Positions 5,258 to 58,415 of a stretch of DNA of 64,000 bases are shown here, piece by piece; position 1 is the first letter of the stretch; every line of letters starts with the position of its first letter. Location of the stretch: positions 124,001 through 188,000 of IMG/VR virus record IMGVR_UViG_3300023202_000383. The stretch is one strand, 5' to 3'. Made by a program: the position numbers and the translations under genes. Below the pieces are notes generated by a model, which ran no database searches, was not told the DNA's origin, and saw only the letters and a list, made by a program, of their open reading frames with translations.

Positions 5258-5340
5258 GCGGGTGTGGCGGAACGGAAGACGCGGCAGGTTTAGGTCCTGC
5301 TGACCGCAAGGTCGTGGAGGTTCGACTCCTCTCACCCGTA
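5258..5340 (+). tRNA. tRNA-Leu(TAG)
   Basis: cloverleaf GCGGGTG/CACCCGT; anticodon arm GCAGG-TTTAGGT-CCTGC; long variable arm. Confidence 0.92.
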
Positions 5341-8689: not shown

Positions 8690-8764
8690 TTAGCCCCGCT
8701 CGGCCTCGAACCGAGTTTTCCGGATTTAAAGCCCGGCGTGCTAACCAGGTACACTACGGGGCCA
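8690..8764 (-). tRNA. ochre-suppressor-type tRNA, anticodon TTA
   Basis: minus strand (T)GGCCCCG-TA-GTGT-ACCTGGTTA-GCAC-G-CCGGG-CTTTAAA-TCCGG-AAAA-CTCGG-TTCGAGG-CCGAG-CGGGGCT(A)-A. Confidence 0.85.
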
Positions 8765-34339: not shown

Positions 34340-37150
34340 TTAAAGGTTGATCTGGCATGTTCCACCAGCACATGCTGCTTCACCAGACAGGTCAGTGTTG
34401 TCTTCTTCCTCGTGGAAGTCTTCCCAATTTATTTTTGTATAATTTGAGATTAGCTCTTTCCACTTTGCTTCATCTGCGTCGGTGGATATTTCTTCAAATG
34501 GAGCGTTTTCATACTCTTTATCACCAGTAAATGCCAGCATTGATACGCCCGAGAAGTACTTCTTATTTTTCCACAAGAATTCTTTAACATCATCCCATTC
34601 ATCTTCCTTGACGCTTATCGTGTTAGACACATTGTGCGTGACCCCTGGAGATGAATCAGGCTTGGCGGTTCCGGGCGATACCCAATTCTTTTGAGTAGAC
34701 ATGACACGCTCAAGGAATTCAACAGCTGTGAAGTCCGATCTTATAAGTGCCCCATCTGGTGCCTTGACTGGGAACATTAGAAGATCTTTGTTCTTATTGA
34801 CAGTAATGCACATATGCGGATTATGTTTTTTAAATTCCTTGTATGCTTCGCATTGCGGATTTACTCTTATTCTTCTGAAATATCTTCTAGCGTGGTGGCA
34901 ATGATGGCCAGCACCTACGCCTCCAAGCACTAATGATGCGGTGCCGCTTGGTTTGACGCATGTTACTCTAGCTGCCGACCTTATTCCAATTTTGTTTGCG
35001 ATTTCAATATTGGTTTCGACAGCTATTTGAGCTGCTGTCTTCTGAACCTCCGGGCTTAGAGCAATATCTGGATTGTCCATTATACCAGTGAGAGATACTC
35101 CTAGAAGTGCCTCTCTAGTGCATATTGCTTCGCTGACCCATCCAAGATAACCAAAATCTGTATATCCTGCTTGAGCTGTGCCAAGTATAGCTGCTGCTTT
35201 TACTCTGTCATAAAACTCTTCTGTTGTGTCTGCAGTTGCACAATTTACCTCAGATAAATTACATTGCTGCCAGCCCCAGTAGGTTGAGCCGACTTTCAAT
35301 TTTGGGGTCTTTTTGCCATTCTCTTTGGCCCATTTTTCTGTCCATACTTTTATCTGTGGCGTGATTTCGAATTTTGGGTTCAACCCGATTTCGACGCATT
35401 GTCCTATTTGAATAGTATTGATGAATACTTCATTATTTGATGGTTCGTTTAGGCAGTACACCTGCTTCTTGCCAATATATTCAATAGCTTTAACTTTGGT
35501 ATAGTCGTAAGATCCCTGGGGATAAGCTAGCGGGATTCTATCGCCAATTTTTAAGTCTTTGCATTGTTTCCTGATTTTAGTCCTACCAGCAACAGCAGTA
35601 GCAGTAGATCCAGTACCGTTTTTGCGCCAGTTTCTCTTATCTTCAAGGACTATCCATTGATGATTGGAAGTAGTCTCTATTTGGTCACCATTCTGCAATG
35701 TTATTCTATATACCTTAGCAGATTTAGATGTCCTAAAAACATTCGATGCAATTGATCTACCGTGACTGTTGACTATATTCTGGACGCCATAATCATCGAG
35801 AGTCTTATGGCTAGCATATTCTTGGCGTCCTCCGTTTTCCCACAATTCTTCGATGGTCTTGTATCCATCGCTTGTCATTAGCTTCATGTTGCCAGTAAAG
35901 CACGGATTAGCCCCTGTATCTTCGTCATTAGTAAAATAAAATCCAGGCTCGCCCCATTGTCTTGTCGATTTGAATATTCTGTCGTATTGTCTCTTCTTTG
36001 TCTCTTTACGATGCAAAACAACAGAGTTGTTAGACCTAGCCCTCCATGGATGAGTCTCGCCCCATTTGCCAGTCTTGGCATTCATCATTTCGCCATCGTC
36101 AATAGAAAACAGGCATATCATTGCCGCTTCTCTGATGCCGCCAGCGTAAACAGCGTCTGCCAATGAGCACATGATGTCATAACATTCTATTGGTCTTAGG
36201 TGTCTTCCTTGTGCTAAGTCTAGAATGCTTCTGGATCTATCTAATGCCTGCTTAAGCGGTAAGTGTCCAGGTGCCTTCCCGCCGCTTGTTTTAAGAGGAG
36301 ATCCCTTAGGTCTTATCTTGCCGTATGAGAACTCTACGTATGTTCCCGTATGCATATAGGATCTGATCAATTCGTGTGCTGCATCTGCCCAGCCTTCGAT
36401 TGTGTCTGGTATAGCAAAATGTTTTACATTGTCACTATCGATTCTTTTAAGCTCTGGCAACTGATCTACATGCTGGAATTGAACAGAGAACCCAACTCCA
36501 GTTCCACTCAACAGCAACCAGAAAGCTTCTGCAAAAAATTTTGGTCTGTTGCAAACAGAGAATGAGCAGTTGTAGCCTTTAGCGTGATTCAATTCTTGAG
36601 CAGGTCCTCCGAATTGCATAGATCTCATTGATCCAAGCACCTGCTTGTCCCGTACCTTATCCATTACCCAATCTAATTCGCCCTTAATTTGCGGGTATCG
36701 GTCAGCGTGCATTTTGTGCACTCTGTCTACACACTCTTCATAGGTTTCTCGCCTTTTCAGATCTTCTCTGTAGCGAGAATATCGCATTCTTACTACGAGA
36801 TCTTCTATTATTGTTGGGTCTGGGTCTAGACGAGTCTTTCTTAGATCGTCTTTGTGTCTACTATATAATATGTATTCTTCTGCAACACCGTGAAATTGAT
36901 AATCCATCAGTTTACGTTTGACGATTTGTTGAATGTCGTCGACGCCTATTCGATTGTCGCTGTCTAATCTGACAAATGCTTCATCTTCTATCGCTTTTAA
37001 AAGATGATCGAATTTCCCATTAATGTCTGTGCTAGCATCTTTTGCTGCTTTTTGGATCGCTATCTTTATTTTGTCTGGATTCCAGTCTACTGATGTTTTC
37101 CCATCTCTTTTGATAACTTTAGCGGACGCCTTCGTAAGTGGTGACATCAT
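34340..37150 (-). CDS. nrdJ: class II (B12-dependent) ribonucleotide reductase with ATP-cone and intein
   Basis: ATP-cone VIKRDG; SMRSMQFGG; YNCS; NPC-intein-CVEI; TCVKPSGTAS; C-terminal EAACAGGTC. Confidence 0.9.
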   Translation of the reverse strand: MMSPLTKASAKVIKRDGKTSVDWNPDKIKIAIQKAAKDASTDINGKFDHLLKAIEDEAFVRLDSDNRIGVDDIQQIVKRKLMDYQFHGVAEEYILYSRHKDDLRKTRLDPDPTIIEDLVVRMRYSRYREDLKRRETYEECVDRVHKMHADRYPQIKGELDWVMDKVRDKQVLGSMRSMQFGGPAQELNHAKGYNCSFSVCNRPKFFAEAFWLLLSGTGVGFSVQFQHVDQLPELKRIDSDNVKHFAIPDTIEGWADAAHELIRSYMHTGTYVEFSYGKIRPKGSPLKTSGGKAPGHLPLKQALDRSRSILDLAQGRHLRPIECYDIMCSLADAVYAGGIREAAMICLFSIDDGEMMNAKTGKWGETHPWRARSNNSVVLHRKETKKRQYDRIFKSTRQWGEPGFYFTNDEDTGANPCFTGNMKLMTSDGYKTIEELWENGGRQEYASHKTLDDYGVQNIVNSHGRSIASNVFRTSKSAKVYRITLQNGDQIETTSNHQWIVLEDKRNWRKNGTGSTATAVAGRTKIRKQCKDLKIGDRIPLAYPQGSYDYTKVKAIEYIGKKQVYCLNEPSNNEVFINTIQIGQCVEIGLNPKFEITPQIKVWTEKWAKENGKKTPKLKVGSTYWGWQQCNLSEVNCATADTTEEFYDRVKAAAILGTAQAGYTDFGYLGWVSEAICTREALLGVSLTGIMDNPDIALSPEVQKTAAQIAVETNIEIANKIGIRSAARVTCVKPSGTASLVLGGVGAGHHCHHARRYFRRIRVNPQCEAYKEFKKHNPHMCITVNKNKDLLMFPVKAPDGALIRSDFTAVEFLERVMSTQKNWVSPGTAKPDSSPGVTHNVSNTISVKEDEWDDVKEFLWKNKKYFSGVSMLAFTGDKEYENAPFEEISTDADEAKWKELISNYTKINWEDFHEEEDNTDLSGEAACAGGTCQINL
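35399..35902 (-). mobile_element. mini-intein (168 aa), C1...Gln end, at the catalytic NPC|EI site
   Basis: CFTGNMKLMT N-terminus; KQVYCLNEP...VFINTIQIGQ followed by C+1; no endonuclease motif. Confidence 0.85.
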
Positions 37151-54738: not shown

Positions 54739-55233
54739 TTACTTGTAATCATCCAAATCTAATTCCTGGGAGACATGATCTCCGTGGTCTTTTACTTTAT
54801 CGTCATCGTTTTCTAGGTCTCTTTCTGATATTTGATTATCGTAATCACTGACCGTCGTGTCCACGACCTTACCTGGCCCTACTGCATTAGGGATTCTATA
54901 GGTCCATTTCTTTTTAATGGATTCTAATTCAGATTCTATATCTGGTTTCTTAACTACTTCTGGTTCCGGTTTTTCTTGGTCTGGGGGAGATACAGATCTA
55001 CCACTACCGCGTCGCTGTTTCATCTTTATCAGCTTTTGCGGTAGTGGTAGATCTTTAAATGGGATTCGAACGAGTCCCTTGTGAAACTTCTTATCTACAG
55101 TGGCAGGCAAATCCTGTTGAGGACTATTTCTTACTCGCCGGGAGTTCCTGCTTCTGTTTTTCAATGAATACACTCGCTTGCTTGACGGAATCGAAATAAC
55201 CTTCTGGATGGTCTTCCGCCCTACGCCACTCAA
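54739..55233 (-). CDS. hypothetical protein
   Basis: 164-aa ORF. Confidence 0.55.
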   Translation of the reverse strand: MSGVGRKTIQKVISIPSSKRVYSLKNRSRNSRRVRNSPQQDLPATVDKKFHKGLVRIPFKDLPLPQKLIKMKQRRGSGRSVSPPDQEKPEPEVVKKPDIESELESIKKKWTYRIPNAVGPGKVVDTTVSDYDNQISERDLENDDDKVKDHGDHVSQELDLDDYK

Positions 55234-57094
55234 ACTTCTCGCCGCTAGAGGTCTGGCCCGCCTTGGTTATTTCTTTTTGCCATTGCTGGACTTCATATTT
55301 GCCTTGTATCGTCTTTCCGTCATCGTCTTTTGCTGGCATTATCTTAAACGCGCGTCCGGTGTTACCACGCACATCCTTGTACTTCTTGCTGAGCTCTGGA
55401 TCTTTTTCAGATACATGTCTAAACTTCTTAATTGCGGACTTGATATCTTTGTTGACTTTAATTCCAGTCTTCCCCATGATCTTGCCAATCGCAGTAGGGC
55501 CATGCTTGACTCGCGGCCGCTTAATATATTCTTTGTACTGCTCGATCTGCGCATTTATTTGATCGGCGGCTGGATGATCAGCTGGTGCCTTAAGGCCGAA
55601 ATAAAGTCTAAGAGCCGTTTCCTGGCCTGGAGTTAGGTATGATTGGCCCATAAAATCTTGGCTAGATGCTTTATCGAAAAAGCCCTTGATGAGTGATGCT
55701 CTAAGGGCTTTTTCATCTCTAGTAGCCATTTGTGTTTCTGGTTTCGGAGGTTTTGGCTTTTCAGGCGATCTCTCATCTTTTACGGCAATCGTGCCTTTAC
55801 CGGCCCTTCCACCCTTGCCAAGCTGTTTTGCGACACCGCCACACATATCACAGCCAACTAGGAATTTGCGGCCCCCATATTCCATTTCTACGACGCCGCC
55901 GCCGCTTAGTTTCAATTCCACTCCCGGATTGATGGCTTTATCGTCCGCGCGTCGCAGATCTGCAATTCCAGCGTCTTTGAGTGATTTGCGGTTTTGTCTA
56001 GCGATCATTTTCCAGAGACTTTCATCACCAAATACGTCTCTGGCTATGCTTTTGAGAGTATCACCCTCTTTTGTTTCGTATGTTTCTTTAGATCCGCACT
56101 GTGGGCATATCTTCTTGGCCATAAATGCATCAACATGGCCCTGTATGTCATGCATCGACCCTTCGTCGTCGCCAACGGGAGCATCCATTGATTGGATTAC
56201 ATCGCCGACTTTTTGGCCTTTCGTTCTGGCTGTTCTAGTATCGACCTGAGAACGACCTTGCTTGTATGCACGGCGGTCGGCTCGTCTGCTCATTGCATTG
56301 AAGACGTGACCAGAGAATGGCTGAATACCCTTGTCGGTCTTCAGTGCCTGCATGATAGCAAACGTGGCTTCTTGGAATGCATCTCCAAGATCCATGCTGC
56401 GTTGGCGGCGTACGATTTTAGAAATCGGGCCTTTAACGCCGGAAGCTTCCCCACCCTTGAACTTCAGTCCGCCAAGGGCTTCAACGATTTCCGCTATAGT
56501 CCATGGTTGTCTACCGATTCTGTCGAGAGCCAGGGGAAGCTTGACATTCTTCAGATGTCTATAGTCCGGGAAGTCGGGATCATTGCGATACCCCTCTGGG
56601 TTGCTGTCCGACACTTCTCCTACATGCGTCTTTTCTTTTCCAGTTGCAGTTCTGTACTTCTCGTTGTCGGCTCTGAATTTCTGGATAGCAGCGAGGATTT
56701 CTTCGTCGAAGATATTGCCTTGCTCGTCTGCATTGCCAGCGAGGTCATATTCCTTGCCATCTACAGTTATCTGGTCTGGAAGACCACTGATACTCTTTTT
56801 GGATTTGTCTTCATCTCCTTCATCGGCCTTTGTGATTATTTTTATAGCATAGTCATCGTCATCCAGGCTGCTGCCGAGACCGCCTTCTTCCTTAGACATC
56901 TCAATGTATTCTGCGGCACCCTCGCGGTCCGTGAATTTACTGGAAACGGGCTCCCCTGATTTGTCTACAACAACATACTCATAGTTATCCTCGTCGAAAA
57001 ACACATCCTCAAGCAGGATCGGTGCTTCGACAAGATACAATACACCATGACTACGTATGAACATAACGAACCTCCTATTAGTAGATTTGCCCAA
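55124..57094 (-). CDS. sigma70-like protein with an inserted Zn-ribbon/LysM module
   Basis: region 2 DLGDAFQEATFAIMQAL...FSGHV; region 3 SMDAPVGDD; LysM YETKEGDTLKSIA...LWKMIARQN; region 4 LTPGQETALRLYFGL...AIGKIMG. Confidence 0.65.
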   Translation of the reverse strand: MGKSTNRRFVMFIRSHGVLYLVEAPILLEDVFFDEDNYEYVVVDKSGEPVSSKFTDREGAAEYIEMSKEEGGLGSSLDDDDYAIKIITKADEGDEDKSKKSISGLPDQITVDGKEYDLAGNADEQGNIFDEEILAAIQKFRADNEKYRTATGKEKTHVGEVSDSNPEGYRNDPDFPDYRHLKNVKLPLALDRIGRQPWTIAEIVEALGGLKFKGGEASGVKGPISKIVRRQRSMDLGDAFQEATFAIMQALKTDKGIQPFSGHVFNAMSRRADRRAYKQGRSQVDTRTARTKGQKVGDVIQSMDAPVGDDEGSMHDIQGHVDAFMAKKICPQCGSKETYETKEGDTLKSIARDVFGDESLWKMIARQNRKSLKDAGIADLRRADDKAINPGVELKLSGGGVVEMEYGGRKFLVGCDMCGGVAKQLGKGGRAGKGTIAVKDERSPEKPKPPKPETQMATRDEKALRASLIKGFFDKASSQDFMGQSYLTPGQETALRLYFGLKAPADHPAADQINAQIEQYKEYIKRPRVKHGPTAIGKIMGKTGIKVNKDIKSAIKKFRHVSEKDPELSKKYKDVRGNTGRAFKIMPAKDDDGKTIQGKYEVQQWQKEITKAGQTSSGEKFEWRRAEDHPEGYFDSVKQASVFIEKQKQELPASKK

Positions 57095-57103
57095 CTGGTT
57101 CTT

Positions 57104-58084
57104 TTATCGCCCTCTGATATATTCTTCGAACAATTCGCAGGCGTTATCCTTGAATTGTTCGAGATCATTCTTGGTAGCAAGCCCGTTGCTCAATGCAAGA
57201 TCGAACTCGTCGTCGAGCCTGCAGCCGAATTGTATGGGATCGTCTGTGTTTAGAGTGATCCTACAACCGGCTTCAATCATTCTTTTTATAGGATGGTCCC
57301 CTATCGATTTTACGACCCCAGTGTAGAGATTGCTGTGGAGGGCCAAATCAAAGGTGATCCCCTGGTTGTTGCACATGTCAAGAATCTCTTTAGAGGCTTG
57401 GATTCCGTGTGCTATTCGATCGACGCCACTACATTTTACCACATCTTCAACGTGCTTGCAAGTATCTGGCAGCTCACCCACATGTGCACGAACGTGCTTA
57501 CCGGCTTTGCGCCAGTTTTCGATGAGTGGTTTGTAAAAGTCGATATCAAAGGCTGCCTCATCCCCAACGAGGTCCATTCCAACAAAATGACGCGCTATCT
57601 CATCATCAAAAATTATATCGGCAAATCGCTTTTGATCATCTCTAGAGGACTCGTACTTTAAAGACAATAACAGGCCGACATTTACGTTATGTCTTTTAGA
57701 CGACTCTTCGAGGTTGCGTGTTATTATCTCAGCTGCTTTATGGACCGACCAGTTGTGGTGCTTAGTAAACTTGTTTAGTGACAAGCTTATTTCAGAGAAA
57801 TCAATATTATCCTCTCTGAGATCTTTACAGACCTGGTCGACCATTATTCTTATGGCCCACTCATCCCACGTAATCTCATCCAGAATTTGGAATTTAGTTA
57901 AGAATGTCTTGAAATCATTTTTGTCGCCACGAGAGAATCTCATGGCTTTGTTTACTTCTCGAAATGATTTAGCTATATGGTATGATTTAGATTTATTTAT
58001 TATTGACCATACAGTTTCAGGGGATATAGACCCACCTAGCTAAAGGTGGCGATGAATGTCGCACCTTGGACGTTCAATCGCCAC
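57104..58084 (-). CDS. add: adenosine/adenine deaminase with an in-frame TAG at codon 15 (CTT-TAG-CTA)
   Basis: AGGAGG SD and GTG 58084; DIHRHL*LGGSISPET; RAHVGE, RIAHG, LNTDDP; the ORF track shows only the 57104..57943 part. Confidence 0.85.
58037..58045 (-). promoter_or_regulatory. candidate stop-hop / readthrough site CTT-TAG-CTA
   Basis: Leu-amber-Leu inside the HxHLGGS motif; removing 6 nt restores the consensus. Confidence 0.7.
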
Positions 58085-58091
58085 AGTCCTC

Positions 58092-58415
58092 CTATCCTGA
58101 TATTAGATCCCTAATAGAGATATTTAAAGAGTTGAGCATTCTGTCCGTGATTCTATCCATCAAGTCATTTTTTCTATCATACGAATGAGTCAATAGAACT
58201 ATTTCTTTTACTGTTATATCATCGAGACTTTTAGACAAGTTATATTTCTTGTCGATAAGACCCGACTTTCTAAGAACCGCAACCACTTTCGCTATATACG
58301 ATTCTGATCCATCTATATTTTCTGATATGCCAGCAATGCTTTGAGCGCCGTCATCGACAGCTACTAATATATCGATAGCATACTCAATCCACTTTTCGTC
58401 TCTAAGCATTGTCAA
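58092..58415 (-). CDS. Rrf2-like winged-helix regulator
   Basis: YAIDILVAV...SIAGISE...SESYIAKVVAVLRKSGLI. Confidence 0.7.
   Translation of the reverse strand: MTMLRDEKWIEYAIDILVAVDDGAQSIAGISENIDGSESYIAKVVAVLRKSGLIDKKYNLSKSLDDITVKEIVLLTHSYDRKNDLMDRITDRMLNSLNISIRDLISG

Follow-up and report, generated by a model that had tools for sequence, protein, structure and literature searches.

Comparative evidence for natural ribosomal stop-hopping in an adenosine-deaminase-like gene of a jumbo phage

An adenosine-deaminase-like gene of a jumbo phage carries an in-frame stop codon flanked by two leucine codons (CTT TAG CTA) inside its N-terminal metal-binding motif, and six more relatives, at 32–39% identity to it, carry the same leucine-stop-leucine arrangement at the identical site, using between them all three stop codons. 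On this comparative evidence alone, in the absence of protein or ribosome data, we consider it more likely than not that the gene is functional and is expressed by a short translational bypass, in which peptidyl-tRNA-Leu hops 6 nt from CUU to CUA, as put forward in the original prediction. Stop-hopping of this kind has been demonstrated in synthetic constructs, but a 2016 review states that no natural occurrences of in-frame stop hopping are known (PMC5009743), and our full-text searches found no report of a natural stop-hop or of recoding in phage deaminase genes.

The gene lies on the minus strand of a 64,000-nucleotide stretch (hereafter the window; positions 124,001 to 188,000 of IMG/VR record IMGVR_UViG_3300023202_000383), which belongs to a 332-kb metagenomic contig, JGI 3300023202, a jumbo phage by size and content. 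A Shine-Dalgarno sequence (one base from its position in the original prediction) and a GTG start open a frame of 14 codons, which ends in HRHL immediately before the TAG; the same frame then continues through the body of the protein (Table 1). The tracked 279-aa ORF, which is what gene callers annotate, is only the part after the first internal ATG. A small Rrf2-like winged-helix gene sits immediately upstream in the window and in two relatives (L003, 1146-1487, and L006, 61-507; L numbers denote loci of the census described below), and in the window the overlap of its stop codon with the deaminase Shine-Dalgarno sequence suggests translational coupling. The 656-aa gene downstream of the deaminase has no Pfam family and only weak PHROG hits (endolysin or tail, E about 1e-5) over residues 335-396.

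Table 1. Positions of the deaminase gene, its recoding site and other features discussed in the text, numbered within the window
Position	Strand	Feature	Remarks
58092-58415	-	Rrf2-like winged-helix gene	TAG stop at 58094-58092
58088-58093	-	Shine-Dalgarno sequence AGGAGG	Overlaps the stop codon of the Rrf2-like gene
58082-58084	-	GTG start codon	Only start codon in this frame between the upstream in-frame TAA and the take-off site
58043-58084	-	ORF1, 14 codons, VAIERPRCDIHRHL	Holds the two N-terminal metal-binding histidines (HxH)
58043-58045	-	Proposed take-off codon CTT (Leu)	In the P site when the stop is in the A site
58040-58042	-	In-frame TAG	Followed by C
58037-58039	-	Proposed landing codon CTA (Leu)	Decoding would resume at GGT 58036-58034
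57104-58039	-	ORF2, 311 codons plus TAA (57106-57104)	Adenosine-deaminase-family body; catalytic H186, E189, H211, D266 and D267 (piece numbering)
57104-57943	-	Tracked 279-aa ORF	Begins at ATG 57943
58033-58048	-	Imperfect palindrome CACCT-TTAGCT-AGGTG
55124-57094	-	656-aa gene downstream of the deaminase
5258-5340	+	tRNA-Leu, anticodon UAG	In principle could pair with both CUU and CUA
8691-8763	-	tRNA, anticodon UUA (ochre-suppressor type)	Rfam tRNA 55.9 bits; anticodon loop CUUUAAA
19995-20067	+	tRNA with undetermined, two-base anticodon ('tg')	Reported by ARAGORN
37220	-	GCA TGA GCT	Chance match; true start of the 959-codon gene (GAGG, then ATG near 37149) lies downstream

The piece after the stop matches Pfam A_deaminase (PF00962) at profile positions 10-311 of 330 (E 2.4e-36; 125.9 bits against a cut-off of 27), so that the first nine profile positions, which hold the HxH motif, lie upstream of the stop. 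Its best PDB matches are adenosine deaminases, and it shows the HxH, HVGE, AHG and TDDP motifs of the TIM-barrel deaminase signature if the two pieces are joined, which requires that the stop be bypassed. However it belongs to a divergent phage clade with HRHLGGS in place of HxHLDG and scores below the NCBIfam equivalog cut-off for adenosine deaminase (TIGR01430; 143.9 bits against 216.55), and can therefore be assigned to the family but not to a substrate. NUDIX hydrolase genes are the commonest neighbours of this clade (11 of 43 upstream ORFs at intact loci; also at L082, 3398-3841), which hints at a shared nucleotide-metabolism module.

A megablast search of the GenBank phage collection found no close relatives by DNA, and tblastn found only distant, intact or unannotated homologues. 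A search with the downstream piece alone, in contrast, recovered hundreds of relatives, with the consensus N-terminus KCDxHRHLGGSISPxTVW. The closest of these (57% amino acid identity) aligns as CAT CTT ------ GGC GGT, and all 55 distinct intact relatives have exactly one residue between HxH and GG; the window thus carries an excess of exactly 6 nt. The insert is unlikely in the extreme to be an assembly or sequencing artefact, although this judgement was made without inspection of reads: the IMG/VR copy contains it, a separate Logan assembly (SRR23862439, 2352 bp), which may or may not represent an independent sample, is base-for-base identical across it, and the same kind of insert occurs in ten other alleles from unrelated samples.

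Some relatives appeared to begin at MGGS, and their DNA showed that while two of these (L003 and L005) are simply mis-called starts, two others (L004 and L006) are truly interrupted at the same place as the window. We made a census of the DNA of 13 IMG/VR loci and 80 metagenome loci. This gave 67 distinct genes, of which 12 rows (11 distinct alleles) are interrupted precisely between HxH-L/M and GG. Seven alleles are CTY-stop-CTN with a 6-nt insert: CTT TAG CTA (window), CTT TAA CTA (L010/L028), CTT TGA CTA (L046/L048), CTC TGA CTT (L017), CTC TAA CTT (L050), CTT TAG CTT (L058) and CTC TGA CTG (L082). The remainder are a +2 allele (L042; CAC CTC TAG G, read as CT-CTA-GGT, with TAG in the A site), a +5 allele (L004; ATG AT ATG GGC), a +4 allele (L067/L080; CAC TGA T GTA) and a +7 allele (L006; ATG TAG C TTG). 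A stop immediately follows the take-off codon in 10 of the 11 alleles, the exception being L004, which has ATA, probably a rare codon in many bacteria, in the A site. In every case, moving the P-site tRNA to the downstream codon restores HxH-(L/M/V)-GG; re-pairing is full or synonymous in nine alleles, but extends to only 2 of 3 positions in L067 and L006. It is notable that the +2 allele (CAC CT CTA GGT) equals the sister Leu-stop-Leu allele of L010 (CAC CTT TAA CTA GGT) minus TTAA, thus one interrupted form may derive from another.

The pattern of variation among these alleles shows signs of selection rather than decay. The middle codon is a stop in all seven 6-nt alleles, although its identity changes and the neighbouring third positions are saturated, and no allele has a sense codon there. 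In IMG/VR, 84 matches to H-x-H-L-NNN-L-G-G-x-I include three deaminases, all with a stop, compared to only 4 of the 81 other matches (Fisher 4e-4). The take-off codon is CTY in 8 of 8 Leu alleles, compared to 11 of 30 intact Leu codons at that position. Every interrupted allele keeps a Shine-Dalgarno sequence and a start 8–17 codons upstream in the HxH frame, an unbroken downstream frame of 303–328 codons and all five catalytic residues. On a maximum-likelihood tree of the downstream pieces the interrupted alleles are scattered, with well-supported branches forcing at least eight changes of state, while homologues in cellular genomes and MAGs are all intact.

We propose that ribosomes starting at the GTG make a 14-residue peptide ending HRHL and pause with peptidyl-tRNA-Leu on CUU in the P site and UAG-C in the A site. 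In a fraction of ribosomes the tRNA would unpair, the mRNA slip by 6 nt and the tRNA re-pair with CUA, with decoding resuming at GGU, while the remaining ribosomes terminate. Nine nucleotides would thus specify one leucine, giving a 324-aa product with the invariant HRHLGGS spacing of the family and the tryptic junction peptide HLGGSISPETVWSIINK. This layout is the one described for stop-hops in synthetic E. coli lacZ constructs, in which matched codons flank a stop, 9 nt specify one amino acid and no elaborate signal is needed (Weiss et al. 1987; O'Connor et al. 1989; PMC5009743; bioRxiv 2024.12.09.627546), and the +2, +5 and +6 shifts named in the 1987 title are all represented among the natural alleles. 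Those constructs were artificial, however, and hops without stimulators are described as low-level (bioRxiv 2024.12.09.627546). We found no conserved stimulatory RNA element: Rfam had no hit at the site, the local fold is not unusual (z = -1.78) and an alignment of the seven Leu-stop-Leu alleles shows conservation only at coding positions, so the yield could be very small. The palindrome spanning the site, which was also noted in the original prediction, occurs in only three of the seven Leu-stop-Leu alleles and is therefore a by-product of the codons CAC-CTN and NNA-GGT-G rather than a required signal. The sensitivity to RF1 that was originally suggested can apply only to the allele in the window, since relatives use TGA and TAA.

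The main rival for this particular phage is stop-codon readthrough, which would give a 326-aa protein with two extra residues (HRHL-X-LGGS), still active or modified in function. The phage encodes a well-formed tRNA with anticodon UUA, overlooked in the original prediction and lying on the opposite strand to the other 25 tRNA genes of the array at 5.2–30.1 kb, which might read UAA and UAG; near-cognate host tRNAs could do likewise. A stop followed by C/CUA is probably also a leaky-termination context, thus the downstream CTN does not by itself exclude readthrough, and the products of the two processes differ only by two residues (PMC5009743). We nevertheless consider readthrough unlikely, since no extra residue between HxH and GG was found in any of the 55 intact relatives or in cellular homologues, and sense-codon versions, which should exist if two extra residues were tolerated, were not found. 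In addition, TGA is not read by a UUA anticodon, and the +2 and +5 alleles cannot be rescued by readthrough yet have matched re-pairing codons (CTC to CTA and ATG to ATG). Nor is there any sign of genome-wide stop reassignment within the window, where 32 single stops flanked by long open stretches (TAA 13, TGA 11, TAG 8) show no excess of one type and TAG ends 15 of 63 long ORFs. Another matched-flank stop in the window, GCA TGA GCT, lies 12 codons into an open stretch upstream of the real start of a 959-codon gene and is a chance match.

It is likewise possible, though improbable, that the inserts are inactivating indels at a mutational or endonuclease-cut hotspot in a dispensable accessory gene, for example through escape from a homing endonuclease, and that no full-length enzyme is made. 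The insert lengths vary (2, 4, 5, 6 and 7 nt) and the alleles are scattered on the tree, as recurrent lesions would be; endonuclease genes are adjacent in three loci (see below), and L067 and L006 lack a good landing codon. However, under neutrality the middle codon would mostly be sense, whereas seven distinct 6-nt inserts all read CTY-stop-CTN; there are only insertions, never deletions or in-frame sense insertions, and no interrupted allele has a second lesion in over 300 codons. Production of the 279-aa ORF alone, working without HxH, or of two separately made pieces that associate, is very doubtful: the 32 codons between the landing codon and the internal ATG are conserved family sequence (GGSISPETVW...), no start codon or Shine-Dalgarno sequence follows the stop, the upstream HxH frame with its own Shine-Dalgarno sequence is conserved in all interrupted alleles, and the two N-terminal histidines are zinc ligands in established structures of adenosine deaminase.

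Two natural bypass systems in phages bear comparison with these alleles. In T4 gene 60, matched take-off and landing codons likewise occur with a stop directly after take-off, and the insert lies in a conserved metal-binding region, travels with the MobA homing endonuclease and protects the DNA from this neighbouring HNH enzyme (bioRxiv 2022.08.31.505936). The gap there is 50 nt, however, compared to 2–7 nt here, there is no sequence homology, and gene 60 needs a nascent-peptide signal and stem-loops, none of which is conserved in the deaminases, where only 8–17 residues precede the site. The nearest natural analogue is the UUA-triggered 7–10-nt bypass proposed for Streptomyces phage terminase genes (PMC10732093), which also involves a short gap at a highly conserved protein junction, a slow-to-decode A-site codon and the argument that an invariant junction excludes extra residues. 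In that case the trigger is a rare sense codon, the gaps change frame and 3 of 100 genes are affected, while here the trigger is a stop codon and most gaps are in frame.

Free-standing homing-endonuclease genes lie immediately upstream of three interrupted alleles (L004, HNH_3, 9e-11; L010, LAGLIDADG_2, 1e-13; L082, HNH, 1.6e-12), while none appeared among the top 25 families listed for 43 upstream ORFs of 30 intact loci (3/11 against 0/30, about p = 0.015, though the numbers are small). L017 has a staphylococcal-nuclease-type endonuclease gene (2309-2839) directly upstream, which is not a classical homing-endonuclease family. Our leading guess is that the insert was selected because it breaks the target site of homing endonucleases encoded next to the gene, and that the ribosome would then 'correct' it, although a simple throttle on enzyme level is the alternative. 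The uninterrupted site in some relatives, such as L013, is a perfect 10-bp palindrome, CACCTAGGTG, containing CCTAGG. No homing endonuclease is adjacent to the gene in the window itself, so here the insert would be a relic or a resistance allele. A broader reading, which we offer only tentatively, is that short indels (+2 to +7 nt) arise again and again at the most conserved DNA stretch of the gene because they destroy such targets, and that only those placing a stop between matched codons survive. That would be a minimal, repeatedly evolved counterpart of the T4 gene 60 cassette and the first natural family of stop-hops.

Stop-hopping has been a laboratory curiosity since 1987, and it has been suggested that some supposed cases of readthrough might be hops (PMC5009743). 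The deaminase family offers about a dozen natural alleles, covering +2, +5 and +6 and all three stop codons, and thus a ready-made allelic series for measuring what makes a ribosome hop. It also shows that gene callers systematically truncate such genes, and may link translational bypassing to conflicts between phages and homing endonucleases beyond T4 gene 60.
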